NCBI GenBank assembly: GCA_029953675.1
Contig: JAMWBK010000011.1
Location: forward strand, 868,001-932,000
Direction of reading: 5' to 3'
DNA length: 64,000 bases
Source of the DNA: Rhodosorus marinus CCMP1338
Lineage: Eukaryota; Plantae; Rhodophyta
The number at the start of each line of letters is the position of its first letter. Positions within the stretch are counted from its first letter, which is position 1. This document shows, piece after piece, positions 3 to 63,876 of this stretch. A program made the translations under genes and the position numbers. Under the pieces are notes generated by a model, which did no database searches, was not told where the DNA came from, and saw nothing but the letters and a program-made list of their open reading frames with translations.

Positions 3-1196
3 CGCTCCTCGGCGCCGTTAATGTTCGAGGTGAGCGTGGAGGTGCATGAGGAGGTGATGAAGTCGCCGTTTTATGGGTTCCTTGAGGCCCTGTCAAAGCC
101 CGTGTTCACGCTCTCGACCAGCTACAATGACGACGTTAGAGTTGGAATGGGCTGGGTTTTTGAGACCCATGACCTGCTTTTGGATTATCCCAGAGGAGGA
201 GGAGGAGTTCACGAGTTTCACGACTTGGTAAGCTATCAAAGGAGTTGTGTCTTTAAGCACAACGGCAAGTCTCAAGTGCTCTGCACGTTGCCCGCTGCGG
301 ACGTCTCTGGACGGTTTCACCCGTTCTTTCATATTGTAGAGAACGACCGACGGTCGAATTACCAGGAGATTGGAATGCTTGACCGCGTGAGTGGAAACAA
401 ACTCTTCTCGATCAAGCAGCTAGCGACACGACCTTGTGAGCTATGTACATTGCGCGGCGAGCCGTGCCTTTGCTCGAACGAGATGGTGTCAAGGGGCTTT
501 CTTCCAGGGACGGATGAATCTAGTGACGGTTTGATAATGGCTCCGGATTTGGATGTTGCAGCTTGCCAGGTTGCAAGAAGGCGCTGGATGGCAGGAAGGT
601 TTGGATTTCACGTGAACGGACTCCCTGCGTTTTCAGTGAATGCAAAGCTGCTGTCATCCGGAGAGATGCTTGAAAGGGCGCGCATCTTTCTGGTGCAGAA
701 CCAAGCGCAAAAATCTACCAGCTTATGTCCAATTTCACATTCAATTCTACAGAGGGCCATAATGTCGGTGTTGGAGAAGAAGGAACAGGAAAACGCCGTT
801 TCCGGTGACAAGGATGCGGAGCGGTTTAAGTGCGACCGGTGTGGTGCTTCATTCACCCGGATTTGGAGCCTTAGGAGACACGTCGCGGGTGTCCACGAGG
901 AGAACCGCCAGTTTGCTTGCGAGTTGTGTTCCAGAACCTTCAAGCAGAGTGGACACTTACAGGAGCACCTGAGGACGAACCATTCGAGAAACGGCGGGCA
1001 CAGTTGTGAGATTTGCAGAAAGCGATTCGGAGTGAAGTCAAAATTAGAGCGCCACATGTATCAAAAGCACTCGAACATAAGGATGTATGAGTGCGAGCTG
1101 TGTCTGAAGAAATACAAGGACGCTCATGGTCTGAAAACCCATGTCAAACGAAAGCACAGCTCGACACATAAGACCACACGGGTTGAGACGTTCTGA
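3..1196 (+). CDS. C2H2 zinc-finger protein (4 fingers) with unrecognised N-terminal CxxC/CxC domain; array copy 1, 5'-truncated by the window edge
   Basis: Frame is open from position 3 (RSSAPLMFEV...). It aligns to internal positions of copies 2-4 (HEEVMKSPFYG, VRVGMGW, RPCELCTLRGEPCLCS). Four CxxC-x12-H-x4-H fingers at the C-terminus. Confidence 0.9.
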   Translation, partial: RSSAPLMFEVSVEVHEEVMKSPFYGFLEALSKPVFTLSTSYNDDVRVGMGWVFETHDLLLDYPRGGGGVHEFHDLVSYQRSCVFKHNGKSQVLCTLPAADVSGRFHPFFHIVENDRRSNYQEIGMLDRVSGNKLFSIKQLATRPCELCTLRGEPCLCSNEMVSRGFLPGTDESSDGLIMAPDLDVAACQVARRRWMAGRFGFHVNGLPAFSVNAKLLSSGEMLERARIFLVQNQAQKSTSLCPISHSILQRAIMSVLEKKEQENAVSGDKDAERFKCDRCGASFTRIWSLRRHVAGVHEENRQFACELCSRTFKQSGHLQEHLRTNHSRNGGHSCEICRKRFGVKSKLERHMYQKHSNIRMYECELCLKKYKDAHGLKTHVKRKHSSTHKTTRVETF

Positions 1197-2421
1197 AGGT
1201 GCACCAGGAAAGGTTCTACGAAGCACAATGTCGAGAAGAGTGCGCAGCGCTGGAACACGTCCGTTTCTTACGGTTTTTTAACATGTCAGGTTATTTATTC
1301 TTACGATGCAGTATAGGAACCCTTTGCTTCGAATTAGCACTGGTTAAATAGACTCTTGCTTTCCCTCATGATCCCGTTGAGAATGCTGGTCGCAGTGTAC
1401 CGATTCATGTGCCACATCTCCAGGTCATTCGAGAGGATGTTTTCGGGGTCTATCGAAAGTTGTAGGTGCAGCACTCACTCATAGCTAGCCCACCAAATTC
1501 ATGTTACAAGCATTTCGACTCTCAGTGGATCAGTCATGGATCATTAGGAATCGTGGTTAACCCAAGTCCGGATTTAGAGCGGGAAGGAGACCGTCGACGT
1601 CCTCCGTTTTCCAGTTCTCAGTCCACATGGGTTCGCATCTTCGCTGGCATGCGTTCCCGAGACGCTTATATTACCCTCGAGCGACTGCGGCTTTAGTCGA
1701 CAACCCCAGCCTCTTGGCGACTTCTGCTGAAATCAAGTTAATCTGCAGCCCACCCTCAACTGTGTTAAGGGCTTTGCGGTTACCAACCTTCAGTCCAACA
1801 ATCGGTGAAGGGTAGCTCTCCTTTCCTTTGCTGACGGTTTCTCATCGTGGAATGCAGCCGAACACGCGTTTGCCTGTGCGGCCGCCAGGATGTGAGGAAT
1901 TGGAAGGGCCGAATAGACAGCTTCTTTGCGGATCCAAAAGTCGCGCTCTCAACGATGGCAGATCCAAGTGTCGAAAAGCGACTAGAAAAAATTGCGCGGA
2001 AGCGAAGCACAGGCTACAACGACAGCAGGGTATCCCTACTGTGAAGTAGTATTCCATCCATTTGCATGCAATATTCAGTATCAAGAATCCCAAAAAGAGT
2101 ACAAAATGTTTATGGTGGTTTCGTGCACGGCTTTTTCGTGCAAATTGTAAATCGAAAGTTATTTTCGCGGATGCAGCATTTTTGCAGTTTTTAAGGTATT
2201 CATCAATTTCAATTTATGATTAGTCAAAGAAAATAGAGAATATATTGCTCCGTTGAGCTGTGTCCGATTATCGCTTCTTCTATCCACGGCACCACGATAG
2301 TCAGCTACTTGACGCTTCCTCACGACAGACTAGGATGTACTAGACCAAAATGGGATAACCAAATTGTAGCTACCCATAGTCCAAGAGGTCCCACAGAATT
2401 CCGACTAGCAAACAACGTGAC

Positions 2422-2659
2422 GGAAACTTTTCCCATAGCTCAGGCTGATACTGGTTTGGTGGTTTTTCTAACATAGCCTGATGCGCTAGAGTGGTCAGTG
2501 GAGAGGAATAACATTCATCTGGGCATATAGACTGCTTGGAACCTTTTCCCATAGCTCAGGCCGATACTGGTTTGGTTTGGTGGTTTTTCTAACATAGCCT
2601 GATCGGCTAGAGTGGTCAGTGGAGAGGAATAACATTCGTCTGAGCATATAGACTGCTTG
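2422..2659. repeat. Tandem duplication, ~116-bp unit x2
   Basis: 2422-2537 and 2538-2659 are near-identical (ggaa[a/c]cttttcccatagctcagg...gcatatagactgctt). Copy 2 has an extra tttgg. Confidence 0.95.
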
Positions 2660-3287
2660 ACGAGCACACAGTTAGGGACCGTACATTGATTCTTCTGGTG
2701 GAAAGTAAACGTCTATATGGTCACTTTCGGCCGAGCGAAATAGGGTAGTCACTTCCGTCCCATAAAGAAGTCCCATGATGTATGACAAGTATCGGTCGGT
2801 CGGATAAAGGTTTATCGGGCCTGAAAGCATGTCATGATTAGAGTGTTTGACTTCCGGCTCGTGTCCAATACAAGTTTATCGGACCTGAATAAAAAGGAAG
2901 ATGTGGTTCGTCCGATGTTTTCTTTACGGTCCGTAGTGGTCCCACAATTTTCTTCTTCCGGGCGGGTTGGGCGGAACTTCGATAAAGACCGCCCAGTTCG
3001 CAAATTACAGCGTAATCGTTTATAGAAGCCAGAACAACGATACCAGTATTTCAGTAGACTTCTAGTACTCTCTTGGGATTTGACAGCTGTCCGACGACTT
3101 CGATCGGAGATCGCGACGGAGAGGAGAACAGTTCCAAAGTCCTTGGGGAAGTTGTGCGGGAAAAGAAGGGGAAAAGGAACTAAAATGAATGTCAGAATCT
3201 GCTAAAAGAAATTCCACATATTCGGAAGGATAGTTGTTGCGTTGGCGAAGTGGTTATCCCAGACGAGTGGACATCAGTGCTCAAACT

Positions 3288-3342
3288 CTACGAGTGGGTT
3301 CGAATACAACACGGTCGGTGTTGTATTCGAACCCACTCGTAG
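3288..3342. repeat. Perfect 25-bp inverted repeat (hairpin, 5-nt loop)
   Basis: ctacgagtgggttcgaatacaacac (3288-3312), loop ggtcg, exact reverse complement at 3318-3342. Confidence 0.95.
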
Positions 3343-4330
3343 CTCGCCATGGGGATCGGGATCGGGCGATAGGTCATTTCTCCCCTGGGGACCGGTTAGA
3401 GGAAGGACCGTAAGGTACACGTGCCTTCGTCAACAGCCAACAGCCCAGACTCGAATTCCAAATAGGCGTTCAGAAAATCCTGGAATTGGACTTTCACTAT
3501 GTCCAAAAAGAACGATACTCGGACAGACTCTCCCTCTATTTTCTTTGACTAGTCATCCCTCTCCTTTTTGTACCAAATGCACCCAAAAAAACCCAATTGG
3601 ATTGTGTAGGACAGCCTGTATACTTCAAAAATAACCTTAATTCAATACCACAAGTATCGCCAAAAAATCATAATTCAATATCTAAACCAGAGATGATTGA
3701 TTAATAAACTAGAGTTGATTGAATATCCCCCAATAAAACGGTTTCTCCTTTTTGTTGAATAATTGCCACGAAAACACCGCCCCTAGATTTTCTGATGGTG
3801 TGAACTGTCCATGGACGAGGAAGAGAATTTATCGGACCTGTCTGATCATCGTTGATGGGACGATCTATATATGCCCCGGCCCGAACGCTCATACTAAACA
3901 TCATCGCATCTGCAGAGTAGAAAGTCAAAGCACTTTTTCACATCGCTCCTGTGAAGCAGAAAGTTCTTTCAGTCGCACCTCGTTGGGTGGAGGCGGCACG
4001 CAGATAAACAGCTCCTTCATGACGAAGCCAATTGGCAAAAGTTCGGTGGCCGTGAAGGGGACGAGAAGTGTACAGTGCGACAACATCATTCCTTCGCGTC
4101 CGATTTTGGGGATGTGCCGTTTTAGAGGGCTATGGCAATGGTCGAGGAGGAGGTTGGTCTGTGTGCGGGGGGGTGAGAGGTTTATGAATCCTTACGAGCA
4201 GGGATTGTTGTTGTCATTAAGTTCTATTGATTCTATTATGTGAGTTTTGTTCAACGATTTCAGCTCGGAGTGAGTTGCTTTTGTATGAGGGCATCGAGCT
4301 TCTGGTTTTTTTTTGTGTAGATAAGGGGGG

Positions 4331-5686
4331 ATGACGTTTTCGGAGCTGTTTCCCGTGGCCGACGAGGTGTTGAAGGACTTTATCCTTCACAAGAGCGATG
4401 TGAAACTGTTCGACTTCAACTCTGCAAATGCGATGATGTTTCATATGAACGTGCTGCTGCACGAGGAGGTGATGAAGTCGCCGTTCTATGGGCTTCTGCA
4501 GGGGCTCTCCAACCCCGTGTTCATGCTTTCTACAAAGTACTGTGAAGACGTGAGGATAGGAATGGGTTGGATTTTTGAGGACTTGGGGCCGCTTCTGGAA
4601 TACCCTTCCGGTGAAGGAGGCGTTCACGGGGTACAAGAGGCGGTCACTACCGAACGGATATGTATCTTCAAGCACAATGGCCGAGCTCGCTTGATCTGCA
4701 CACACCCTGGAGATGACAATGGAATTCCGTTCTACAACCTTGAGGAGATAAATATGCGGCAAAACTGCAACGAGGTTGGTGTTCTTGACAGAGAGACAGG
4801 AAACAAGTTCTTTTCAGTGAAGCAGATGGCGACGAGACCCTGTGTTATATGTCGTGCCAGGGGGGATGGCTGCTGCTGCTCGGAAGTGATGATGTCGAGG
4901 GGGTTTGGAGCTATGCCTATCGAGACAGAAGAACGAACCATGGAAAGATTGGATTTCAGTGACCAGGCTTTTACAGTTGCGAGCAGGCAGTGGTTGTCCG
5001 GGAGGTTCGGGTTTCACGCAGACGGACTTCCTGCCTTTTCGATTAACTCGTGGATACTATCATCTGGAGATTTATTTAACAAGGCCAAAGTCTATCTGGT
5101 GCAGCAACAGGCACAGCAATCGACAAGACTACGCCCTCCGTTGTCACGCTCGCCCTTGGAGAGATCGATATTTTCGATGATGACCGAAAAACCGCTGCGC
5201 AAGAAAGCATTGACATTTGGGGAACCGAAGCAGGTATTGATGGATGCCATTCCATCGACGGACGCTGAGACGTCGGAAAATCTGGTCGATAGGGAGCGGG
5301 TGAAATGCGACCAGTGCGATGCTTCGTTTGGAAGCGGATGGGGCCTGCGAAGGCACATTGCAGGAGTGCACGAGAAGAGCCGCAACTTCACGTGCGAATT
5401 CTGTCCAAGAACTTTCAAACAAAGCGGACACCTGCACGAGCACATACGCGTGTACCACTCGGAAAATGGGGGCCACGACTGCGAGATCTGTGGTAAGCGT
5501 TTTGGAGTGAAATCGAAACTGGACCGGCACGTTATTCAGAAGCACATGAATGTCAAGGAGTTTGAGTGCAAGCTGTGCCGGAGAAGGTACAAGGACAAAC
5601 ATTCGCTGAATACACATACGAAACGGAAGCACGCTTGTGAAGAGGGACAAAGCGCTAGCGAGGAAAGAAACCGAGGCGAGGGATGA
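4331..5686 (+). CDS. C2H2 zinc-finger protein (4 fingers) with unrecognised N-terminal domain; array copy 2
   Basis: Intronless 451-aa ORF. N-terminus MTFSELFPVADEVLKD matches copies 3 and 4. Contains RPCVICRARGDGCCCS and four C2H2 fingers. An in-frame TAA lies 9 nt upstream of the ATG. Confidence 0.92.
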   Translation: MTFSELFPVADEVLKDFILHKSDVKLFDFNSANAMMFHMNVLLHEEVMKSPFYGLLQGLSNPVFMLSTKYCEDVRIGMGWIFEDLGPLLEYPSGEGGVHGVQEAVTTERICIFKHNGRARLICTHPGDDNGIPFYNLEEINMRQNCNEVGVLDRETGNKFFSVKQMATRPCVICRARGDGCCCSEVMMSRGFGAMPIETEERTMERLDFSDQAFTVASRQWLSGRFGFHADGLPAFSINSWILSSGDLFNKAKVYLVQQQAQQSTRLRPPLSRSPLERSIFSMMTEKPLRKKALTFGEPKQVLMDAIPSTDAETSENLVDRERVKCDQCDASFGSGWGLRRHIAGVHEKSRNFTCEFCPRTFKQSGHLHEHIRVYHSENGGHDCEICGKRFGVKSKLDRHVIQKHMNVKEFECKLCRRRYKDKHSLNTHTKRKHACEEGQSASEERNRGEG

Positions 5687-7176
5687 CGCGGTTGGAAAAA
5701 GCCAGTTTTGCTCTGTCTCTTCTTCGTAAGACTTGCAGCCTAAAAGCAAGAATAGCAGCTGCAATCCTGCGGATCCTCGTTTCGCCGGGAAGGGAACTTC
5801 ATTGGCCCGAGACAGCGTTCGAGGCTATGGAAAAGCGCCTATAGTCTTTCGCGGGACTGAGTGCTTCCGTAGTGGCTCTTAAGTACGATGCGCGATGGCT
5901 TCGTAGTCAGAATACATGCCGTCAAGCGCACTTGCATAAGCGCAGACGCTTGTGCAGGGCGGACTCCTTAACTCCTCGTTCAGATAGTGTCGATTTGCGA
6001 TGGATTTGGAGTGACGGAGCTGATTGGGAGGTCAATTCCCATGCTCTACTATCAACTGAAGCCACTCGGAGGAACACATGTGGACCCCAAACCACGAGAG
6101 GGTACCTTGTTTCCGAAGAGTCAAGAGGAGAATGTCTACAGGCACAACTTCGACAGCTATAAACCCACCCGCGGCCTCACACACGGCGTTCAAAATTCGA
6201 AGTATGTCGTATAATCATTAACAAACTCTGACAGCACTAAACTATACCGAGGACAATCGATTTCGGGATCTTCAGTAGCAGTTCCAGATGACGCTAGGCT
6301 AGACACACTGTGTTGCCACCGCAGACGAAAGGTCTGCTCAAAACACAACCTGGAGCATTGTGAGGACTGTCCCTTTTCCTTCCTCGGCCATCTTTTTGCC
6401 AAGGAAGCCTTACTCGACGGCAGTTCCCAGGCAAAAGAGACAGCTCTCCGGGAATGTCGTGACCAGTTATAACGGCCTTCAGAAACAAGCTTGAACATTC
6501 ATTTTGCGGCGGGATCACTTCTACGCCCCTAATCGCCACTGGTCAAAACACGCACCTCAAACTGCCCCGACAACCGTATGGGGTTGCACAGACTGCTCAA
6601 GCGAGGAGAGCCGTCTAGCCAACAGTCCCGCTACCCTTCTTTACAGCACCTATGATGTCAGGTTGGTACATGTATGCTGCAGCACTTATATACTGAAAAC
6701 CATCTAACTGATGATCTCCACCAGCAGTGTCCAGAAGGCTATCCTACTCTGCTCAATCTCCACGCTTCAGGGTGATCTCCTTCCTCACGGGATTTCTCTC
6801 TGTACATTTGCTGATGATAAAAGAAAAAGCTCTGTGGGATTTTGGGGCTTCGCGGGGAAGATGGAGGGAGAGCTCGGGAACTGAATGGGATGAGTTGCTT
6901 GTTGGTATCTTGAAGCTCTTCAATATAAGGCAAGCAGAAGGAGGTATGTTTTGAGATTAGGTATTGTAGCTCACGCTATGCTGCTGCGAGCTTGAAGTCA
7001 TTGCAGGAGGGTGGCTTTTGGGGATGGGAGAAGTGAAAAATGGGTCAGCGAGAGCGGGGGGTATTCGAGGGACGAAGTTGTTCGTGGTCTTGTTTCGGTT
7101 GAGTAGTCTTGGATGAAATCACCGGAGGTTGGTGTTTTTGGGCTTTTTAGGTTTGGTTTTGAGAGGAAGAAGAACA

Positions 7177-8491
7177 ATGGAGTTTGAGGAGATGATTCCA
7201 GTGGCGGATGAGGTCTTAAAAGACTACATGCTGCATAAGGGTGAAGTGAGAGTGTTCGACTTTGGTTCGGCTTCACCGATTATGATTGATGTAAAGGTTA
7301 TTTTCCACGAGGAGGTGATGAGGTCGCCGTTCTATGGAATCCTCAAGTCGTTTGAGAATCCCATTTTCGTTACGTCAGTTAAGTACAAGGAGAAAGTTCG
7401 GATAGGAATGGGCTGGTCTTTTGAGGATTCTGGGCCTCTGATCGAGCATTCCAAGGGGAATGGAGGCTGGCATTCAACTTCGGAAGTGACCACGACCACC
7501 AGGATTTGCTTTTTCGAACACAAGGGTTGCGCTCACCTCCTGTCTACACCTCGGGGCGGAGATACGCCCGGCCAACCGTTCCTACATGTGGTTCAGAAAG
7601 ACGGAGAGACGAACTATCAGGAAGTAGGGATTCTGAACGAAGAGACAGGCGCGAAAATTTTTGGAATTAGGCAGTCCGCCACACGTCCCTGCGTCTTCTG
7701 CTCAGCAAGGGATGAGCCATGTCTGTGTTCCCGGAAAATGATCTCGAGGAGCTTTGGTCCTCCTTCGCTGCGGAAGGAAAAGTTCCTCGCCGGAACCTTA
7801 AGCATTCGACGACGGCGCTTTCAAAAGCACAAGCGATCAGTGGCTTTCAGGGAGATGGAATTTTCACGTGAACGACATGCCCGCATTCTCCACTCACGCC
7901 ACGGTGCTCTACGCCGGGACGATGTTCGAGAATGCGAAAAACTTCCTCTGCCAACGGGAAATAATGAAATCTGCAATCCTCTACGAACCAGTATCTTCGT
8001 CATCGGATTTAGAGAATGTGGCTTCAATGCATCTTGAAGGTGTGCGCGGCTCTGTTGCGGAGCTTGGAGTAGACCTTGACATCTCGGATGGGATGAGCAG
8101 CGACGCAAAAGACACGCCTGCAAAGGTTTACGAATGCCGGAAATGTGACACCGTGTTCAGACGCGCTTACGACTTGAAAAGACACGACGCAGGTGTACAC
8201 CAGATTAGCAGAAGCTTTGCCTGCGATAAATGCTCTAGGACCTTCAAGCAGAAGGGACACCTGAACGAACACATGAAGGCGTACCACTCCGAAGCCGGTG
8301 GCCATGAGTGTGAGGTATGCGGGAAGCGATTTGGAGTCAAATCCAAACTCCTACGGCATATAGTGGGAGTCCATACAAACATGCGACTGTTTCCGTGCAA
8401 GTACTGCCGTAAGAAGTACAAGGAGAAGCACCTCCTGAACCACCATCTCAGACATAAGCACCCAAGTGAGAACCCGATCACTACTGATTAG
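7177..8491 (+). pseudogene. C2H2 zinc-finger array copy 3 with a +1 frameshift at ~7800 (pseudogene or assembly indel)
   Basis: Homology to the paralogues runs in the frame of ORF 7129 up to ...EKFLAGTL, then continues in the frame of ORF 7868 as AFDDGAFKSTSDQWLSGRWNFHVNDMPAFS. Removing one A at 7800/7801 restores a linker of the same length as in copy 2. Confidence 0.85.
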
Positions 8492-9324
8492 GCGGAGCGG
8501 GAGGAGTTTTGAGTCCCGCTGTGGAGGCCTTGCAAGAAACAAGGTGTGCTTTTTAACGCTTTTACATAACTGCGAATATTATATTACGGTACTAGACGTG
8601 CTTTTGGGACTCGCACTTCATGCACGTCATCCTCTCCCAGCCGAGCTGAGGGACCATGAGCACGCGTACATCGATCCGCTACTAACTGTACTAATACGTT
8701 CACCGTTCGATTAATTTTCTTTAATAAAAATGAGGCATTTAGGAAGGTCAGGTCTGCGTGTGTTTTTCACGTCTCCTTAGTTCAAATTAGTTCACCTTAC
8801 TTGGACCAGATCAAAAACTCCCGGTCTAAGTCTGTCTTATATAGTCTTCCAAAGTACCAAATATAAACCAAAAGATTGCTGAATAGGTGCTTTCAAATAT
8901 AGCTCTTCCCTAATCTGTCCTATCATCAGCTTTTACCCTTTCGTACTAATGAAGAGCTCTGCTCGTCAGCTCCGGGACATAACGTGGCGTCCGCCCCACT
9001 GTGTGCTGACTTTTAGCCTTTTTAAGTATCATAACCTGTACTGCCCAAAAATAAAAATAAGACATGTACATGAGATGCCAATACAAGTCAATGATTGGTT
9101 AATTTTAGATATCATAACCAATAATGTCCACGAAAGATTCAAAGTTGAAGAGCTTAGGACAGGTGTCTTACTAGATAGTAATAATTGGAGTAATATTCAA
9201 TCAGTAGTATTTTAAACCAATGAAGATGCTGCAAAGGAATTTTTTTCCTTGAAAGCGTTTTTATTGGCTGTGATGAAATTGAATTTACGCATTTCATTGT
9301 TTTGCCCTATCTGGTTGCTGACAG

Positions 9325-9448
9325 TAGGTTTGTGCCCGTGTGGGTTGGGTTTTTCGCTGGTTACCCCTCTAAACCCCCCTGATTTCCCGGGTTTAACCAC
9401 TTCTTGGTCGTAAACAGCGAAAAGCCTGACCCCCTTGGCATAAACCTA
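9325..9448 (-). mobile_element. 124-bp MITE copy A (inverted relative to B and C)
   Basis: ~40-bp imperfect TIRs (TAGG...CCTA). Its reverse complement matches 12272-12395. Flanks ctgacag/ctgacaa (6 of 7 match). Confidence 0.9.
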
Positions 9449-10332
9449 CTGACAAGGCTCCATATTGGTCTGGCCAAGCGGACTTGGTTTTGAGGACCTA
9501 GTCCGCCGCGGACGGTATTCTGAGATGGTTGTTTATGACTGACCAGATATGGTACGATATGACTGGATGCAGTCAGTTACGGTACCAGAGCTTTGCTCTC
9601 GTCTTGATATACGGTTGGAACAATTCCCCCTCCGGGCCAGCTACATTGTCCTACCGTTAGTCTCGTTCCTAGGCGTTCATCGTTGTAGTTCGAAGAAACG
9701 CTGGAGCAAAACCACGAGCATCCGAGGAGCTGACGAGGCGGGTATTTCAGCCGGTCTGCCTTAACACACCCCTTGTTAAAATTTGAAGTACTCTGGAGTA
9801 GCCTCGAGCGTCCCGCGCTAATCTCCCCAACAGCCACCCGCGGCCTTGTCGACGCCCAGCTGGGCGGACAGATGTAAGTCCACTAGTGAGAGTCGTACCC
9901 AAAAAGCTAAAGATAAGCTTCCGACCGACATCCATAGCTCGATCTGATTCAGGCCACACCATCTCAAACTGGTGTATAAGACCCTATGGAGGGTCCAAAA
10001 ACAGGTTCTTCTAAACTAAGTTTGGTGTAAACTTATCAACCTGTCCGTTAAGATCCTTTGAGGGGCTGAACCAGCAAGCTCACGTCCTAGCTCGGTCCCC
10101 ATGCAGTCGGGCGTACTCTCTGGAAAGTGCGGACCGATGTACTAGAAATATCTGAGCTGAAGGTGGAGAGGGGAGATTGGGTGCTTGGTCGGAGAGAGCA
10201 CCTGGATTCGTGAAAGAGAAGGACAAATGGAGGAGAGAACTCGCTGGTTTGGAGAGAGGCTTTTGGCCGGTTAGTAGAGATCTGACAAGTTTTTTCGATT
10301 CGGATGTGAAAGGTGTTGGCATTCCTTCAACG

Positions 10333-11640
10333 ATGGAGTTTTCGGATATGGTTCCGGTCGCGGATGAGATTCTGAAAAACTGGATCCTCCACAAGGCTGA
10401 TGGAAAAGTATTCACTATGCAGGATTCTACCCCAATTTTGGTGAACGTCAAGGTGACGGCTCACGAGGCGGTCATGAAGTCGCCTTTCTTCGGGCTCCTG
10501 CATTCCTTTGAGCTGCCCTGCTTCTTCCTCAGCATGAAGTACAGTCCAAACGTCCGGCTCGGGATGGGCTGGACTTTTGAGGATCCCGGACCTCTGGTGG
10601 AGCATCCGTCTGGTGGCGGAGTGAGCCACCGTCGGAGGGAGGTCCTGAGCTACCACCGCTTCTGCATGTTTGAATGGAACGGTGCAGCGAACATGTTCGT
10701 CACGGTTGTCGGAGGGGACTCGCCAGGACTTCCATTTATTCGGGTAATTGAGGAGGATGGCGCTGCCAACTTTCAGGAGGTCGGAATTCTTGACAACGAG
10801 AACGGCAGTAAGCTGTTCAGCGTTAGCCAGACGTGCGTTCGGCCTTGCTACTTCTGTTCAGCGAGGAACGAACCATGCTCTTGTTCCCATGAGATGACGC
10901 TGAGAAGCTACGGACCTCAAATCCCTCAGGGAAAAGATGAGTTGGGGGCGCGGGAGTTTGTGTTCGAGGACGCCCCGTTCAACTACATAACGCAGAAATG
11001 GATGAGCGGAAAGTGGGGATTTCATTGCGACGGACGACCAGCGTTTTCCACGGACGCCGTCGTCCTAACGGGTGGCGCGCTCTTTGAGAGAGCTCGGAAC
11101 TACCTGAGTCAACAGGAGGTAGAGAGACGGTCCACGCCACTCCATGCAAGGTCGCTCTGGGGCTCTCAAAGCAGCCTCTCCCTGCTTACACTAGGGGAGG
11201 TCGACGAGGAAACGTTTGTCGACGACCTTGAGGATTCAAATTTCTTCGACAGCGATTCAAAGGCATCTGCTGTTCAACTTGCATGTGCGAGCTGCGGCGC
11301 GACGTTCAGGCGTGCGTACGATGTTCGGAGGCATATTGATACAGTACACAGACAGAGCCGGGACTTCCCTTGCAAGCAATGCTCGCGAACGTTTAAACAG
11401 AAAGGACACCTGAATGAGCATATCAGGGCATATCATTCCGATCACGGAGGACACTCCTGCAGTCTCTGCGGGAAAAGATTTGGAATCAAGTCGAAACTTG
11501 ACAGGCATATTTCTGGAGTGCATCTGTCCCTGCGACTGTTCGAGTGCAAGTCGTGTGGAAACAAGTACAAAGAGAAACACTTTCTCACGAGACACATGAA
11601 GAAAAAGCATCCAGAACTTGTCGGCCTGGTTACTACGTAG
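10333..11640 (+). CDS. C2H2 zinc-finger protein (4 fingers) with unrecognised N-terminal domain; array copy 4
   Basis: Start placed at MEFSDMVPVADE by paralogue alignment (the ORF is open further upstream, from 10177). Contains RPCYFCSARNEPCSCS and four C2H2 fingers. Confidence 0.92.
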   Translation: MEFSDMVPVADEILKNWILHKADGKVFTMQDSTPILVNVKVTAHEAVMKSPFFGLLHSFELPCFFLSMKYSPNVRLGMGWTFEDPGPLVEHPSGGGVSHRRREVLSYHRFCMFEWNGAANMFVTVVGGDSPGLPFIRVIEEDGAANFQEVGILDNENGSKLFSVSQTCVRPCYFCSARNEPCSCSHEMTLRSYGPQIPQGKDELGAREFVFEDAPFNYITQKWMSGKWGFHCDGRPAFSTDAVVLTGGALFERARNYLSQQEVERRSTPLHARSLWGSQSSLSLLTLGEVDEETFVDDLEDSNFFDSDSKASAVQLACASCGATFRRAYDVRRHIDTVHRQSRDFPCKQCSRTFKQKGHLNEHIRAYHSDHGGHSCSLCGKRFGIKSKLDRHISGVHLSLRLFECKSCGNKYKEKHFLTRHMKKKHPELVGLVTT

Positions 11641-12271: not shown

Positions 12272-12395
12272 TAGGGTTGTGCCAAGTGGGTCTGGTTTTT
12301 CGCTGTTTACGACCCAGAAGTGGTTAAACCCGCGAAAACAGGGGGGTATAGAGGGGTAAACCAGCGAAAAACCCGACCCACTCGGCACAACCCTA
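12272..12395 (+). mobile_element. 124-bp MITE copy B
   Basis: TIRs tagggttgtgccaagtgggtc... / ...gacccactcggcacaacccta. Flanks ccatgat/ctatgat (6 of 7 match). Confidence 0.92.
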
Positions 12396-12737
12396 CTATG
12401 ATTACATATCAATAGAAACCACAGCCATTCCTGATCCCCCGCCCCCTCCCCTCATCCGCATTACGAGATTCATGGTCAACCCCAATGTAACGGCAAAATA
12501 ATTTCAAATATAAACTATTTTAGTAGTTTTTAGAGCCTTTTTAAATTCCAATTGATTAGGTCCAACGGGTGAGTGTTGGGGGTACATTTCGCAAGTCAAG
12601 CTCGGTTGGGAGGGTTCCGGACGAGGGCTGGTGTGACGTGTATCACAGTAGTCAGATAGAAGCGAATTGGTGAGGCCCTGTGGTTGTGGTAAGGGGCCTG
12701 GATTGTTGCGATCTGTTTAGCCGGTGGTTGAGGAAAA

Positions 12738-17317: not shown

Positions 17318-17441
17318 TAGGGTTGTGCCAAGTGGGTCGAGTTTTTTGCTGTTTACGACCCAGAAGCGGTTAAACACGCGAAAGCAGGCGGGGTTTAGAG
17401 GGGTAAACAGCGAAAAACGCGACCCACTTGGTACAAACCTA
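17318..17441 (+). mobile_element. 124-bp MITE copy C
   Basis: Highly similar to copy B. Perfect 7-bp flanking duplication ctatagg at 17311-17317 and 17442-17448. Confidence 0.93.
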
Positions 17442-18274
17442 CTATAGGCGTGGGGATATTGATCTGACTGCAAGCGCTTGAATGGGTAGATCATTCTAAA
17501 TGCGGGGCCGTTTCCAGCAAGGCGTTTCTGTCCATGGAGAGTGACGCGAAGGGTGAAGAGCTCAAAGGCGAAGCAAGGCCTTTCTCTCTATCCAGAGGTG
17601 CCAACCAGTTGACATCGCATAGCGTAGCCAACTGTTAGACTCTTTTCCGACCAATACAAGGACACGTGCATAATTATTATTTGTTGTTCATCGTGCCATC
17701 TAAATACATCCAAAAAGCTATAAAAGTTAAAGCCGAAATTCATTGGATGGGATGAGCTCTTAAGACACGTGGTTCTCTTTCATTCCTTTAAAACACGATA
17801 TTGAAAATCGGAACAAATATAATGCATTTCACGAACCTGGGGCAAAGACAGAGCGACCCCACTTGCTCGATCATAAAAGACATATATATGACTATTTAAA
17901 AATTAGTTTATCAGTCAACTACAGCCCCATCTCCTGACCTAGTTGAACGTATGGGTAATTGTTGTTAATTTATACGAAATAAATAGGACTTGCTGAGATA
18001 TTGGATTGAAAACAATCAATAATCGTAATGAAATTCGAGAATAAAAAATTCGTTTATGACATTTATGTGGGTTTGGGGATTCATTGCTTATCTGATAGAC
18101 TGAGTGAAGTATTGATCGACGAGATTTGTCTTGGGGCTTTACTGGTCTCTGGGATAGACAGCTTGTTGAGAGTGAAGGAGGATCTGCTGACTGTTAATCT
18201 TCTCAATCGAGTTGGAAGGAACGGAATAAAACGATTTGGATTCTCTGTATTTAGTATCTACTTTTCACTGAAGG

Positions 18275-30780: not shown

Positions 30781-33117
30781 TCGAAGGATACTCGCCAAGT
30801 CACCATTTACAACGCCTCCACTCTTAAGGATGGGTTGAATACACGGACATCGATCCCAAGGTGCTCTGACTTCGCCACGCGAGTGGGGAGAGCAAACAAC
30901 ATCAAGTCAATCAAACTAGCGCCCTGCAAAAGTCAATAACCCCAGCGTCGGGAGTTTCTTGCAAAGTACGTCTCCTAAACCAATGTCAATGACAATCACG
31001 CGGTTGCCGGATTACGAAGCGGTCCAGTTTCAGTATAGTGGGTTCCATCTTGGTACTCAGATGAGTTCCATTGGAATTCGAAACTCTACATACTAGGAAG
31101 TCCCTTGACGTTCAGCACTGCTGAACCGCTATTTCTTCGCCCATCGCAACACAAATCCCCCGCCCAATGCGACTGGTCGTACAGGAAATATCTCAGCAGT
31201 GTCAGGAGATTGATATACGTTGATTGATCCTATTTTCAATCACCATCAAGAAATAGACCAACAAACATCAACCAAATATCAATATTGATTGATATTCATC
31301 AATATCGGTAGATTCGATCTATTTATCCTGTACCGAGAAGGGCAAAGATAATATGTTCGTAATTAGTTCGCGGATATTGTTGCGATCGGATATCGTTATT
31401 AACGCTTCATCTGGTCTGAATATGGCAAAAATGTATACAGCGATAACGTCAGGGGTATAAATTTTCCGCGTGTACAAAAAAATCACTTGTGAGTCATATG
31501 TAAGTGCGCTCCTAATTTCCGAAATTAATGATACTGAGAGACTATTAATTGGTTAGCTTAGACTGAAAGTCGTGAACTATTCGCCCAAGCCGGGTTTGAA
31601 CTGTAATAATCATATCAATATTTAAATATTCAAAGAAAAAAGTATATGATTGGATTGCAACAGATGTATGGCATTGTTTATTGGATAATTGAAGTATCCA
31701 ACCTAGGTTCCACTGCAATGGCAATGACCGATCAGTTTTCGAATAGGAATCCCCAGCCCTTGGTTTCTGTAGCCATGGTCAGCCAGCAATGTTCGGAATC
31801 TTAGGGGGAGGATTTTCCACCACATGCCTAAAAAAGCATTCAATCCCTGGATCTAAAAGTAGTTGAAATATCTCCTTAATCATGTTCATTCCGAGTCGAA
31901 CGTCTAGATAAACTGAAAAAAAGAAAACTTATAGGCCATGGGTATCTTAATTATGATTCCGCGGGAACGTTCGAGCATAGTTCCCGCCCAGACTGAGAAG
32001 ATACAAGGAGATGTTTGTGCAGGGGGGTTCCAGTTTGGGTGCTATCTTACAAGATCTCCACAACTGTAACGCACTGGTGTCATATCTTCTATCGTACTCT
32101 ATATAATAATGAAATAAAATAAAATAAATGATACCGATTATCGAATATACTGGTAACAAGTCGTATATCTATTTCTGCAGCCAAAAATCCGAACATGCTG
32201 CTCAAGAAATATTTATTATACATATTGTCACATAAACGATATTGTTCAAAGCCGTTGGCTTTGGATCTTCTGATTCCACCACATGTTGAAGAGCGGACAA
32301 CAAGCATCAAACTCGATGCAGTCGGAATTCCAACGAATCTCACCTAACCCCCCTTACAAACCGATTTCAAGAAACCCTATCAGATCCCGATTTTCAAATT
32401 TTAGCAAAAGACAAAACCCGCTCACTCCAATAATATCCGTTTCGAATAAAAATACCCTGGAAACCTCCAATTTTGGAGCACCCCCCTTTTCCGACAAGAA
32501 TTGCTAGCACTTCAAACCCCCCTCTGCCCCGCTACAAAATTCATCCTCATGGGCATTCAATGTCCTTACTGATTTTCCATCAAAACAACACAGGTTGTTA
32601 AGAAAAAGAGGCAAAAAAAGATGAATTGGCAGCTATTGGTCTTTTTCAGAAGTTTCTTAGCCCCTTCGTTTTGCTTAGGCAAAAAGGAATTTCTTCATCT
32701 CAGGAAAATTCCAGCACATCCTTCTCCAGGCCGTTCATTTTGATCTGGGGAGTGGCCCTTTTTTAATATGGGCTGTTGTCATAATTAACAAAACTAGTTC
32801 TATAAAGCAGGAATAATATAAGTTTTTGGAAATATATGGATTTGATTTAGATGCTCAGGGCTTGATTTGGAGAGCCGCACGCTTTCTTAAGATGTTCAGG
32901 AAGTTGATGGCTGCCTTGCATTTCGCGCTCATATAGCTGGCGCTCAAAGAGTGTTGGTGATGAGTGGGAAGTGGGGGAGGGTGAAAGGCAGGTTGGACTC
33001 TTAAGGATGGAGTATACGTTTTGAACGAGTAGGATGATAAGATGAGATAGGAGAGAGTGGTTGGATTCTTTGAATGAGGGTGTATTTAGTTGTTGTCCAT
33101 ATTGTTATTTAGTCGAG

Positions 33118-34260
33118 ATGGCGTTTGTGGGTAGTATTGGGGTAGGTGGCGCCCGGGCTGGGCAGGGGCGGAGGTGTGTATCTATGAAGGTACAGACCAT
33201 GCCGACCGCTGTGCGGTTGCAGAGCTTGAGGTCGTCTGTAAATAGTCCTGTTGGAAAGGTCCGCAGCAGAGCTCCATGCAATGTAAATGACGCGCTGGAC
33301 TACTTGCTTAGTCGGGGTGTGAGGATTGACGCTGTGGAAGTGGGAAGGAGCGTAATGGACGTGTTGAGGGAGCTGCATGTAGAGGAAAGCACCGCCCTTG
33401 CTGGCTTGTTAAGGGGTATGCCCCTCACTGAAGTTGAAATTTCCAATATGTTTGGAGAGGAGACCCTTGAAGTTTGGAGAAGGGATAGAGAATTCTGCGG
33501 GATGATGCTTGCAAACCCTTTGGAAACGCCGAGACTTTCACTGGTGTCTATGATTGGCGACTTTCAATGCCTGGTCATTGAGCTCGCTCATGCAGTAGCT
33601 AGTCTACGACATCTTCCGATGAGTTCTTTGTCCAAGAAGACCAAGGAACATTTGCAGCAGATACTGAAAGTCCACGTCCCGTTGGCGGACACCCTGGGCC
33701 TGAAGGCGGTGCATGCGGAGCTCGAAGAACTGGCGTTTATGCACCTTTACCCGAAGGAGTACGACCAAATGTGCGTGCTTGTCGGGGAGCGGTTGGAAAA
33801 GTACGGAACTTTGTTGGGAGACACAATCAGGGAGATGGAGCTTGCGCTGGCAAATCTACCGCAGTTCCAGAAGGTATCATCATTCCGCGTGTACGGCCGT
33901 ATCAAAAACTGCTTCTCGATTTACCGAAAGATGATGAGCAAGGAACTCAAGTTTGAAGAGGTTATGGACTTCGTAGCGCTTCGAGTCATCCTGAACCCGA
34001 AGACCGGTGTTTCTGAACAAGAGGCGTGCGAACGGGTGATGCGAGAGGTGACGAAGCGCTGGAAGACCGTGGAAGGCACAACCAGGGACTACATCAGCCA
34101 TCCGAAGGATAACGGATACCAGTCCCTGCATACCACGATTCTGCCAGAGGGCCTCCCAATGGAGGTCCAGGTTCGCACGGAAAGAATGCACGAGTGCTCT
34201 GAAATCGGCAGTGCTGCCCACTACAACTACAAGTTCGAGGGCCTGCACCAGCTGATCTAG
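33118..34260 (+). CDS. RSH: Plastid-targeted RelA/SpoT homologue ((p)ppGpp synthetase) with degenerate HD hydrolase region
   Basis: MAFVGS transit peptide. Synthetase motifs GRIKNCFSIYRKM, DFVALRV, DYISHPKDNGYQSLHT, EVQVRT, AAHYNYK. AGLLRG replaces AxLLHD. Confidence 0.93.
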   Translation: MAFVGSIGVGGARAGQGRRCVSMKVQTMPTAVRLQSLRSSVNSPVGKVRSRAPCNVNDALDYLLSRGVRIDAVEVGRSVMDVLRELHVEESTALAGLLRGMPLTEVEISNMFGEETLEVWRRDREFCGMMLANPLETPRLSLVSMIGDFQCLVIELAHAVASLRHLPMSSLSKKTKEHLQQILKVHVPLADTLGLKAVHAELEELAFMHLYPKEYDQMCVLVGERLEKYGTLLGDTIREMELALANLPQFQKVSSFRVYGRIKNCFSIYRKMMSKELKFEEVMDFVALRVILNPKTGVSEQEACERVMREVTKRWKTVEGTTRDYISHPKDNGYQSLHTTILPEGLPMEVQVRTERMHECSEIGSAAHYNYKFEGLHQLI

Positions 34261-49750: not shown

Positions 49751-51316
49751 TCAAGGGAACTGCTTTTGCACGTAAGAGACCCTGAGTTCAACAAAACGAT
49801 CGCAAAGTGCAGAAGTGCATGACCGGATAAGCCGAGGAGCAGTCCCTGGTCGAACCGGAAGCCCCAGGTCAAACGTGTTAGGGGCAATAAGAGTATCGTG
49901 CCCACTGGTAGTATCCTCATCCATGACGGTGACCTCGATCTTGCCGCTGTATGTCCTCGTTCCAAGTGACCTTTCATAGTTCCATACCGGGTTGTGGTTG
50001 CCCCCGATCGTCGGGGTCTTCAGATAACCAATGGAATATCCGTTGGCATTGAAGGCTCTCACTTCAACGTACGGGTCCGATTTACCCGCAAAGAGACCAT
50101 CCCTGTCCGGAAGGTTGTGTCCCTTCACCACTTCAACAGTTATCTCACCATATGGATACTCACAGTTCCGACCGAACCAGCCTCGAGCGCACTCGCACCA
50201 AAAGTCCGAGATGTTGTCAATGCATTTTCCTCCGTTTTGGCACGGATTTGGATCGCACTCGTTGCGGTCGGGAATGAACTCGCTCTTAAACCTCAGCTTG
50301 TAGTCACAGTTACCAGGAGAAGCACAGAGCACGTTGTTCATCGTTCCAGGACGCACGGTCACCAACTGATCATAGATGATGACGTCGTCCCCACTCAGAT
50401 CGTCGCTATCAAACACAGATATTCTGTAGAACATGTAGGAGCCTGGGATAAACTGGTATCTCTTGTTCCAAACGGGCGTGTTATCGTTGCTGATAACGTT
50501 CGTCTGTCTCACGGTCCTGCTTCCGTCCGCGTGGACCGCTTCAATTCTGACGTAGGAGTCCGGTTTCTTTGAGCTGAAACAGCAGGAGTCCTTATTGGGG
50601 AAGTCTTTGCCCTCAATGATGGTTAGAGCCAGCGATCCTTTCAGTCCCTCGGCTGGGCAGTAGTACATTCTGTTGATAGTGTTAATGTCAGCAGCACTGA
50701 GGTCCGTTGCGGTGCCAAGTGGGCGGGAGGCATTGATTGTCTTTTTTCCGTTGCGGCTGAGGAAGAAGCTTCCGTGGTGCATGATAGAATTGTAGTCGTA
50801 GCTGATCCCGTAGGTATCGACCTTTTTCCATGGCTGTGACTTAAACTGCTTCTTGTACTCGTCGCCGACGTTGTTCAGGAAAAGTGAGATGTATGAGGTC
50901 CTCTGCGGATGCACATGCTGGTCGAACAGTCCGATAGCATGTCCAAGTTTGTGCATGACGCGAGCCTTGTCGTCAGAAACGTCGCCAGCGCAATTTCGCC
51001 TAATGTTCACTCTTTGCACTCCACCCATGAATCCAACTTCTTCTTTGTAACATTTAACAGTCTTGGACAGGAATACGATGCGGTTGTTTGCTTGACTGCT
51101 CTGAATGAACAGCAGGCACGTCTCCTCGGCAAATCGCTCAATAGCGCTGCGGATGTCCCGTTTGTCCTGCGACGTCAACGTGGAATGGAAATCGTAAAAG
51201 ACGGCCTTATCGGGCCACTTTTTCGCGTTCGATCTCACTCCTAGTGCTGCGTAGCTGGTATTGATGAGCATGGCCAACAAGGCACACGCCAACACGATCT
51301 TCATTCGCCCGAACAT
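49751..51316 (-). CDS. Secreted astacin-like (M12A) - C2 - EGF - C2 protein, predicted catalytically inactive (copy 1)
   Basis: Signal peptide (M)[18 protein letters not shown], start at 51316 or 51304. [12 protein letters not shown] replaces HExxHxxGxxHE; SIMHH. Two C2 domains (PDSYV/NTPVWN, SDPYV/HNPVWN) flank [14 protein letters not shown]...[12 protein letters not shown]. Confidence 0.9.
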
Positions 51317-52229
51317 TCTTTCAGAAAATCTATTCTCTCCTTCTCCTTCGTTGACTTGTTTGCTGTCTCTTCCCAGCTCTTCCTTGATTGTTTGTTGCCT
51401 CAACTCAATCGCTCAGATCACATCGGGAGAGACCAGCTTATATAGGCACCTAGGAGCCGAGCATCCCGACGCGCGTCAGCAGATTTTGGCCTGCTTTCGG
51501 ACAGGTCAACCACCAGTATATCGCCGAGAGTCCATATCCACATGTCAGGGATATCAAGTGCTCCAAAAGTCTACTGTAAGAGGTTCACTCAGACTATTAA
51601 ATTGAGCTAAAACGTAACATGTTCGCTCATCACCATGGCCAAGTTCAAGTCAATACACTGAACTGCTCTCAAGCCCCGGCCCTGATCAACCACCACCTAT
51701 TTCAGTGCACAAAACGTCTCAAGAGTTCCAGTACGCAAAAAAAGCCAAAAAACAACCGTTTGATACATTTCCAGCGCATACCTCGTGTGTAGCAAACCAT
51801 AGCTCGGCTCCAAATCGAGGATCTCGAAATCAGTTGACGAAAGAACGCGATTTTCCGGCTGAAATTGATCAATAATTTTTTAGACATATCTCGTTGTGTG
51901 AACGGCGAGCATTAATAGCATTAATATTTAATCATAAATTTCTTTTCAATATGGCCGTGAACTTGATTGGATTCTAAGGGACAGGTGTGATTCCACTGTC
52001 AGGAAATCGAGGAAATCAGGAGCTTGTAACGGAAAGAAATAATCTCTGAAAAGAATAGTTGTTCTAGTTAGTTTTTAAGAATTGGACGCCCCACTGAGGA
52101 AATTTTGATGCGGCCATCGAAAACCACTTTGGTGGAGATGATTGAAATGAGTTAATATTTAGAAGAACTTACATCGGCGATTGAGGGCTGTGAATCTATT
52201 GGATAACCGAGTTTGGGGATAGAGAAAGC

Positions 52230-62292: not shown

Positions 62293-63876
62293 CTAATTCT
62301 GGTAGTGGTAGTTGACCTCAACGTCCACCCAACGAGAGCACCTGGATGGACTGTCACAGACCTTGACAATGTAGGGCTGGGTTCCCTGAAGGACTGGATT
62401 GTTCAACTGGAATGTTCTCATCGGAAGGAGGGTATCATCCCCGCTAGTTGTGTCGTGGTCCTTGGTTGAAACGGCGAAGGATTTGAACGACCTGTAGCCG
62501 AGCGAGCTGGCGTAGTTCCAGACGGGATTATGGTTTCCTCTGATAGTAGGTGTCTTCATGGTGACTGTCCTTCCGTCCACGTCAGTTGCCACAATAGTTA
62601 CGTATGGATCAGAGTCACCTGCACCAAAACCGTCCTTGTCCGGAAGGTTGTGTCCTCCGAGTACCTTGAGGATGAGCTTTCCGAACGGGCGCTCGCAGTT
62701 TACGCCAGTGAACCCACGCGGGCAGTTGCATACGTAGTCTGCTTCGAGATCTACGCATTCTCCTCCATTCTCGCAAGGGTTTCTTGCGCATTCATCACGG
62801 TCCGCGGTCAACTCTGTCCTAAACCTTAGCACGCCCTTGTCCGTCGCTCCTGACGAGTGGTACATGACGTTTTGGGATGATCCAATTCTAACAGGGAATA
62901 TTTGGCTGTAGAAGATCAAGTCGTCATCAGACCCGCTGTCGTCATCGAGGACGTGGACCCTATAGTACATCCATTCGTCAACGTTGAAATCGATCTTCTG
63001 GTTCCATTCGGGATTGTTGTTGTCACGGATCACTCTCGTCTGCTGGGTAACCTTGTGTCCGGCGGCGTTGTAAGCTTCCACTTTGACGTACGTATCTGGT
63101 CTCGACCTACCGAAGTAGATGCTAGGGTCCTTATCCGGCAATCCCTCCGCGCGCTGAATGGTGATCGAGAACCTCCCGTTAGTACCCGTTCCCGGACAGG
63201 TGTACATTCTGTTGAGCGTCAGGATGTCGCTTGAGGTCAGGTCGGTTGAGCCTCCCAACGGGTATGCGGGGTTGTACTTGTAGGTCAGAGTCCTGCGGCC
63301 GTTTCCACTCAAGAAATTGTTTCCATAGTGCATGATCGATCTGGTGTCATATCGTACACCGTAATGATCAACATCGCTCCACGACTCCTTGTCGAACTGT
63401 TTTTCGTATAGGTCGTCGTCTGTTCTCACGTTATTGAGGTGCACGTTGAGGTAGGAATCACGGTCTGGGCGGTTGTGTTCGTGGAAGAGGCCAAGAGCGT
63501 GTCCGATCTCATGTACAATCTCCGTGTAGGTGTTTTCAAAGCCATCGTCGCATCCCGATCCAAAGTTGACCGTCTGAACACCTCCCTTAAAACCAATAGT
63601 CTCCGAGAAGCATCTCGGTTCGCTAGCCTGGAATCGGATCCTGTTCCGCGCACGTGTGGACTCGATGAAATTTAGACACGTCGTTTCCTGGTACCGCTTG
63701 CTGCTTCTCTTGATATCGGTTTCCTGCCTGTACGACAGACTCGAGTCGAGCTCGTAGAACACCGTACGATGGGGCCACTTCCTGCTGTCTGATCGAACTG
63801 CTGCCGATCCACTACTAAACTCGATCACCGAGGCGATCGCAGCCATCGTCAATAGTATCTTCACCATTCCAGCCAT
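62293..63876 (-). CDS. Secreted astacin-like (M12A) metalloprotease - C2 - EGF - C2, catalytic motif intact (copy 2)
   Basis: Signal peptide. [19 protein letters not shown] and Met-turn SIMHY. C2 domains with Asp-rich loops ([17 protein letters not shown]; [17 protein letters not shown]). [37 protein letters not shown]. Confidence 0.94.

Follow-up and report, generated by a model that had tools for sequence, protein, structure and literature searches.

Why should a unicellular red alga carry a tandem row of C2H2 zinc-finger genes, each headed by the same large domain that belongs to no recognised family, and what could such proteins be doing? To our knowledge, the transcription factor repertoires of red algae have been described almost only by Pfam domain counts, in which genes of this kind appear merely as 'C2H2'. 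The question is raised by a 64,000-nucleotide stretch of the Rhodosorus marinus CCMP1338 genome (hereafter the window; positions 868001-932000 of JAMWBK010000011.1, a record of 1,442,050 bp), at the left end of which stand four such genes. The assembly is described in PMC10250338; a description of the family was not found in the literature consulted, which dealt with transcription factors of red algae and with the genome of R. marinus. All four genes, the last four of a 12-gene array, belong to a real, expressed, lineage-restricted C2H2 family, and they offer an example of probable transcription factor genes multiplying in tandem in a single-celled alga whose genome measures 31 Mb. On balance it is probable that this is a family of transcription factors confined to the Stylonematophyceae, that its members share a common core DNA element, and that the N-terminal domain (N-domain) is a zinc-stabilised regulatory module.

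The original prediction, made from the letters of the window, was of four same-strand intronless paralogues, each encoding an N-domain of about 250 residues and four C2H2 fingers. Open reading frame (ORF) listing with translation, Pfam searches and a scan of the window all bear out the four plus-strand genes, and every copy has the same order of parts: an N-domain of about 262 aa, a variable linker and four fingers. A hidden Markov model (HMM) of the N-domain, run against the six-frame translation of the window, gave exactly four matches (E 1e-67 to 1e-91), which are the four copies, with none elsewhere in the window and none to the right of copy 4. This is far beyond chance. Successive copies start 4415, 2846 and 3156 bp apart. 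Copy 1 is truncated by the window edge, its residues 1-29 lying off to the left and the window opening at codon 30, and its PVADE-x-LK motif is among the residues lost. The motifs given in the original prediction are otherwise all in register, with one correction, the last of them reading W[LM]xG[RK][FW]xFH-x4-PAFS with four rather than three intervening residues. Copy 3 is not a single ORF, since a +1 frameshift splits it.

The suggestion that the array runs on past the left edge proved right. To the left of copy 1 lie eight more genes built in the same way, so that 12 plus-strand genes without introns follow one another head to tail (g01-g12, at 843271-879640 of the record, 36.4 kb), with 0.7-3.1 kb of intergenic DNA between neighbours; those in the window are g09-g12, the right-hand third. 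The scan of the window places the right-hand end of the array at g12, and the count of 12 covers g01 rightward, the sequence seen beyond g01 being 1.3 kb long and containing no long ORF. The locus tags of g04 (NDN08_007242) and g11 (NDN08_007249) are seven apart, as are the genes themselves, so no other annotated gene lies between them. A thirteenth member (NDN08_007190, protein P0032) is found by itself some 170 kb upstream, in the midst of unrelated genes, and R. marinus therefore has at least 13 genes of the family.

Such a regular array could in principle be a collapsed or duplicated assembly artefact, or a recently amplified cassette derived from a transposon or virus. The genes are intronless and evenly spaced, miniature inverted-repeat transposable element (MITE)-like sequences of 126 nt lie near copy 4, and copy 3 is frameshifted, all of which could be read in that sense. 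Against this, N-domains are just 42-62% identical within the window subfamily (g07-g12) and 15-25% identical between it and g01-g06, with finger regions 36-66% identical throughout the array. Synonymous differences are saturated (proportion 0.6-0.9), and apart from small repeats no similarity was found among the array's intergenic spacers, which are unrelated from unit to unit. Orthologous subfamilies also occur in Bangiopsis, in Purpureofilum and in the organism of sequencing run SRR22824290. Paralogue divergence, saturated synonymous sites and unrelated spacers rule out an assembly artefact, which the original prediction had likewise thought unlikely, and a transposon or viral origin was rejected, as neither a transposase nor a viral domain is present and BFVD gave no match; taken together, these explanations are left with almost no probability.

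The paralogues are old and under purifying selection. Nonsynonymous divergence reaches 0.55-1.7 in the linker, compared with 0.28-0.54 for the N-domain and 0.24-0.37 for the fingers, and the ratio of nonsynonymous to synonymous rates in the N-domain is 0.13-0.25 where the synonymous rate was computable. Orthologues of g08-g12, with 80-92% identity, turn up in MMETSP transcriptomes from other R. marinus strains, which shows that the genes are transcribed there.

The frameshift in copy 3 deserves separate mention, as it has affected the public gene model. The reading frame switches between 7800 and 7805, where copy 3 has four bases, AGCA, in place of one codon in its intact orthologue from another strain (P0006, 432 aa), whose transcript is continuous. 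Since copy 3 is 92% identical to P0006 before the shift and 90% after it, with no further stops, the frameshift would have arisen very recently, unless it is an error in sequencing. In the public model, NDN08_007249 (P0007, 386 aa), it is spanned by a predicted intron, which removes the conserved cysteine cluster (window 7668-7840); the model thus lacks the cluster only through an intron that masks a frameshift, and can be corrected.

How widely the family occurs was examined with a profile built from seven Rhodosorus N-domains and searched against 1.84 billion representative proteins (E<=0.001). Word-indexed homology searches had recovered Rhodosorus proteins only, the divergent members requiring this exhaustive profile search. 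It returned 27 proteins, or 26 after removal of P0022 (1246 aa), which was rejected as a spurious match to a low-complexity repeat. Every remaining match is either an N-domain joined to the same set of four fingers or a piece of such a protein; never in this search was the N-domain found alone or with other partners. The named sources are R. marinus, Bangiopsis sp. CCMP1999 and Purpureofilum apyrenoidigerum, all Stylonematophyceae, with further members from SRA runs SRR22824290 and SRR22824282. Judging by the named sources, the family is restricted to the Stylonematophyceae, in keeping with the lineage specificity originally proposed.

A neighbour-joining tree (bootstrap values in brackets) resolves two deep clades. 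In clade A, g07-g12 are monophyletic (97) and sister to Bangiopsis P0011 (92), and adjoin an 11-gene expansion from SRR22824290 (98). Clade B (97) holds g06 with P0019 from the SRR data, g01-g05 with P0032 and MMETSP transcript P0029 (94), three Bangiopsis genes and the Purpureofilum gene. It follows that the subfamilies are older than the divergence of the species and that every lineage expanded a set of its own. That of the SRR22824290 organism is independent and comprises at least 11 members in addition to a g06 orthologue. On its contigs, which are short (segments L002 and L005-L010), no member has a family neighbour within 4-5 kb, and the tight tandem arrangement may for this reason be a Rhodosorus feature. 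Local expansion by tandem duplication, as first suggested, is borne out by the 12-gene array.

What the proteins bind is best approached through the fingers. Each protein has four C-x2-C-x12-H-x4-H units, which match Pfam zf-C2H2 (PF00096) with E-values of 1e-14 to 1e-17 and scores of 52-61 bits, the cut-off being 25.2. They are joined by linkers (EKSRNFT, SENGGHD and MNVKEFE) of seven residues each, a canonical length, known from polydactyl proteins whose fingers wrap around the major groove of DNA, without the TGEKP sequence, whereas the linker between N-domain and fingers is fast-evolving and 40-90 aa long. Among solved structures, the nearest relatives are the fingers of ZNF568 and CTCF bound to DNA (E 1e-19 to 1e-22), and the finger region is basic in all 12 array genes (isoelectric point 9.2-10.0, net charge +9 to +16). 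As the fingers resemble those of ZNF568 and CTCF and their region is basic, sequence-specific DNA binding may be inferred. At the contact positions (-1, 2, 3 and 6), finger 2 reads xGHE and finger 3 GSKR in almost every member of every species; finger 1 is mostly xYDR, with xW[GS]R in g08-g10, and finger 4 is variable.

The N-domain, as the original prediction held, can be assigned to no known family. Neither the window copies nor 25 members across the family matched any Pfam family at E<=1, and a profile search of PDB sequences gave no match of weight. Across the 25 diverse members the invariant or near-invariant positions (P0001 numbering) are G77, W80, R109, E139, D141-G142, G150, C171, C174, C181, W221, G224 and Q258. 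Of the four cysteines, C171, C174 and C181 do not vary and C183 occurs in 88% of members, making a C-x2-C-x6-C-x-C pattern that becomes C-x2-C-x6-C-x4-C in g01-g05. Judging by this conservation, the four cysteines could bind one structural zinc, in agreement with the probable zinc site suggested earlier, together with beta-strands. The strands appear in an AlphaFold2 model from the 25-sequence alignment (predicted local distance difference score, pLDDT, 83.9; predicted template modelling score 0.81); seven Rhodosorus sequences by themselves gave pLDDT 36, which was unusable. The predicted structure begins with a short helix and about 10 antiparallel strands, which follow one another as hairpins and have helices placed after strand 1, and continues with a region of about 50 residues containing the cysteine cluster and several helices, two last strands and a long C-terminal helix. 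Comparison of the domain with itself by hhalign found no internal repeat. It is probably a new, uncharacterised domain. Its structure is predicted with confidence, no relative of it was detected, and as a candidate for a protein fold or domain family not seen before it is well defined.

The order of strands in the model suggests that the N-domain could be an up-and-down barrel of calycin type, like FABP or lipocalins, and the proteins small-molecule-gated one-component transcription factors with one ligand per paralogue. Calycin barrels (FABP, lipocalin, NanoLuc) likewise have an antiparallel meander of about 10 strands with helices after strand 1; the N-domain differs in its insertion of about 50 residues, carrying the Cys4 site and helices, and in its long C-terminal helix. 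The highest Foldseek hits in the PDB are NanoLuc (which is FABP-like), FABP4, lipocalins, siderocalin and designed beta-barrels; invariant R109 and near-invariant E139 are located on strands; and divergence between paralogues is strong in the N-domain, with the fingers remaining constant. The Foldseek hits are, on the other hand, non-significant (E>=0.027, probability <=0.44, template modelling score <=0.29) and give a weak hint at the predicted topology. Alignment by hhalign was negative, with probabilities below 1% (0.3% for FABP4 and 0.03% for NanoLuc), and barrel closure and a cavity are putative features of the model. A calycin-type barrel is considered unlikely. Somewhat less likely still is the fuller proposal that the N-domain is a previously unseen zinc-stabilised beta-barrel that binds small molecules, which would make the family a set of ligand-gated one-component transcription factors that arose in stylonematophycean red algae and an independent analogue of nuclear receptors. 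If this were true, each tandem paralogue would sense a different metabolite and all would compete for the same DNA element.

A further possibility, doubtful and yet better placed than a ligand-binding barrel, is that the N-domain serves to form homo- or hetero-oligomers or to recruit partners, functioning as ZAD, SCAN and BTB do, the paralogues forming a combinatorial network on common DNA sites. The architecture is fixed, the N-domain never occurring without fingers in the profile search, and with common DNA-contact residues the paralogues would meet at the same sites. There is also a conserved amphipathic C-terminal helix with the motif V-L-Q-x-E. ZAD is a Cys4 zinc-binding domain, and the N-domain has a putative Cys4 zinc site too. 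This proposal is weakened by the lack of any sequence similarity to ZAD, SCAN or BTB and by the 262-aa length, far larger than those modules.

The interpretation that we favour, a Stylonematophyceae-restricted transcription factor family with a shared target, would work as follows. The proteins would be sequence-specific DNA-binding transcription factors, all recognising one core element through fingers 2 and 3, whose contact residues (xGHE and GSKR) are nearly invariant, while fingers 1 and 4 would modulate recognition. Properties particular to each paralogue would reside mainly in the N-domain, and also in the linker and in fingers 1 and 4. The N-domain itself would be a zinc-stabilised, beta-rich regulatory module acting in partner binding, in homo- or hetero-oligomerisation or in small-ligand binding, and would not be a second DNA-binding domain.

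Several points weigh against this interpretation. DNA binding, the shared motif, zinc binding and the regulatory role are all inferred steps. The absence of a structural match to the N-domain model at E<=0.001 holds for the PDB and BFVD, searched with Foldseek in local mode; a neighbour in AlphaFold DB is possible. No k-mers were shared above the null level among the 600 bp upstream of the 12 genes, and thus no motif hints at autoregulation. Finally, the spacing is H-x4-H in all four fingers, one of the fingers in copy 1 scores above the threshold of Pfam zf-C2H2_jaz, a double-stranded-RNA-binding family, as well, and some N-domains of the SRR22824290 organism are basic (isoelectric point 8.6-9.1). 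The finger features make RNA binding possible and, with the basic N-domains, bear on another explanation, in which the N-domain itself binds nucleic acid or the whole protein binds RNA rather than DNA. Beta-rich DNA-binding domains that contain zinc do exist, as in p53 and GCM. The N-domain is nevertheless acidic in 12 of the 12 R. marinus array genes (isoelectric point 5.1-6.3, net charge -1 to -10) and matches none of p53, Rel, GCM and comparable domains in fold, and the 7-residue finger linkers are canonical, unlike the long linkers of JAZ-type fingers. We consider this explanation very unlikely, and a nucleic-acid-binding role for the N-domain in particular highly improbable.

Table. Coordinates of the four window genes, of the solitary thirteenth member and of other features; positions refer to the window unless stated otherwise.
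Feature	Position	Strand	Protein or locus tag	N-domain	Linker	Four C2H2 fingers	Cys cluster RPC-x2-C-x6-C-x-CS (putative zinc site of N-domain)	Remark
Copy 1 (g09)	3-1196	+	P0005, full protein 426 aa	3-710	711-830	831-1157	429-476	Single ORF; stop codon 1194-1196
Copy 2 (g10)	4331-5686	+	P0001, 451 aa	4331-5116	5117-5305	5306-5632	4835-4882	Single ORF
Copy 3 (g11)	7177-8491	+	NDN08_007249	7177-7966		8135-8461	7684-7731	ORFs 7129-8037 and 7868-8491 in two frames; +1 frameshift at 7801-7804, within N-domain
Copy 4 (g12)	10333-11640	+		10333-11124	11125-11283	11284-11610	10840-10887	Final array gene; ORF 10177-11640, first ATG at 10333
Thirteenth member (P0032)	JAMWBK010000011.1 660846-682198 (locus L004)		NDN08_007190					Gene at 10001-11353 within segment
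Tandem 121-bp unit, two copies	2422-2659							Spacer between copies 1 and 2
Inverted relic of copy 2, 84 bp	3885-3968	-						Matches copy-2 codons 15-41
MITE-like element, 126 nt	9323-9448	-						
MITE-like element, 126 nt	12272-12397	+						
MITE-like element, 126 nt	17318-17443	+						
RelA/SpoT homologue	33061-34260	+						HD_4 and RelA_SpoT domains
Astacin-type ORF	49751-51403	-						Paralogue of next row
Astacin-type ORF	62293-63876	-						Paralogue of previous row

The DNA around the four copies shows some further features. An inverted relic of copy 2, 81% identical to it, lies about 360 bp upstream of its start codon and, if transcribed together with copy 2, might base-pair with the 5' part of the coding sequence. 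Within the spacer of 3.1 kb that separates copies 1 and 2, a unit is repeated twice in tandem at 90% identity. The three MITE-like elements, with terminal inverted repeats of about 38 nt (TAGGGTTGTGCCAAGTGGGTC...), are 89-90% alike, and two of them flank copy 4 on either side. Beyond the array, the window encodes a RelA/SpoT homologue, presumably a plastid (p)ppGpp enzyme, and two paralogous ORFs with a hydrophobic N-terminus followed by an astacin (M12A) metalloprotease domain, C2, EGF and C2, a domain combination that seems unusual for an alga. Neither Rfam families nor tRNAs were found in the window.

With which known systems, then, should the family be compared? The original prediction likened it to the KRAB-, SCAN- and ZAD-ZNF clusters, and in outward form the likeness holds. 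KRAB-ZNF genes of vertebrates, SCAN-ZNF genes and ZAD-ZNF genes of insects also combine C2H2 fingers with a lineage-specific N-terminal accessory domain in same-strand tandem clusters, and the independent lineage-specific expansion that goes with such clusters is found here too. The N-terminal domains of KRAB-, SCAN-, ZAD- and BTB-ZNF proteins are, by contrast, absent from the R. marinus family (Pfam, E<=1), and the KRAB, SCAN and ZAD modules are short helical or treble-clef structures, compared with a 262-aa domain that is predicted to be beta-rich. The analogy fails in its evolutionary pattern. The KRAB, SCAN and ZAD families keep their accessory domain conserved and vary their finger arrays; the R. 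marinus proteins always have four fingers, with near-invariant contacts in fingers 2 and 3, and it is the N-domain that diverges. The pattern is thus the reverse of that of KRAB-ZNF genes, the DNA-binding module being kept. This would make the family a natural contrast to KRAB and ZAD clusters, with an accessory domain that diversifies while DNA specificity, as the conserved contacts suggest, is held.

A second comparison, as a functional analogy only, is with nuclear receptors and with the Zn2Cys6 factors of fungi, which carry a 'fungal-specific TF' domain. Both groups likewise join a conserved zinc-containing DNA-binding module to a larger, more divergent regulatory or sensor domain, and they also expand in particular lineages, sometimes in clusters. 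The R. marinus proteins differ from both in that their DNA-binding module is of C2H2 type and C-terminal and in having no homology to ligand-binding domains. Nor does the cysteine cluster of the N-domain correspond to known fungal zinc modules: Zn2Cys6 (PF00172; C-x2-C-x6-C-x5-12-C-x2-C-x6-8-C) has six cysteines and the cluster four, and neither this module nor the copper fist (PF00649; C-x2-C-x8-C-x-H with an adjacent GRP motif) is matched in Pfam at E<=1. By analogy, the logic of the family appears closer to that of transcription factors in which a conserved DNA-binding domain is coupled to a diversified sensor or regulatory domain than to that of KRAB-type clusters.

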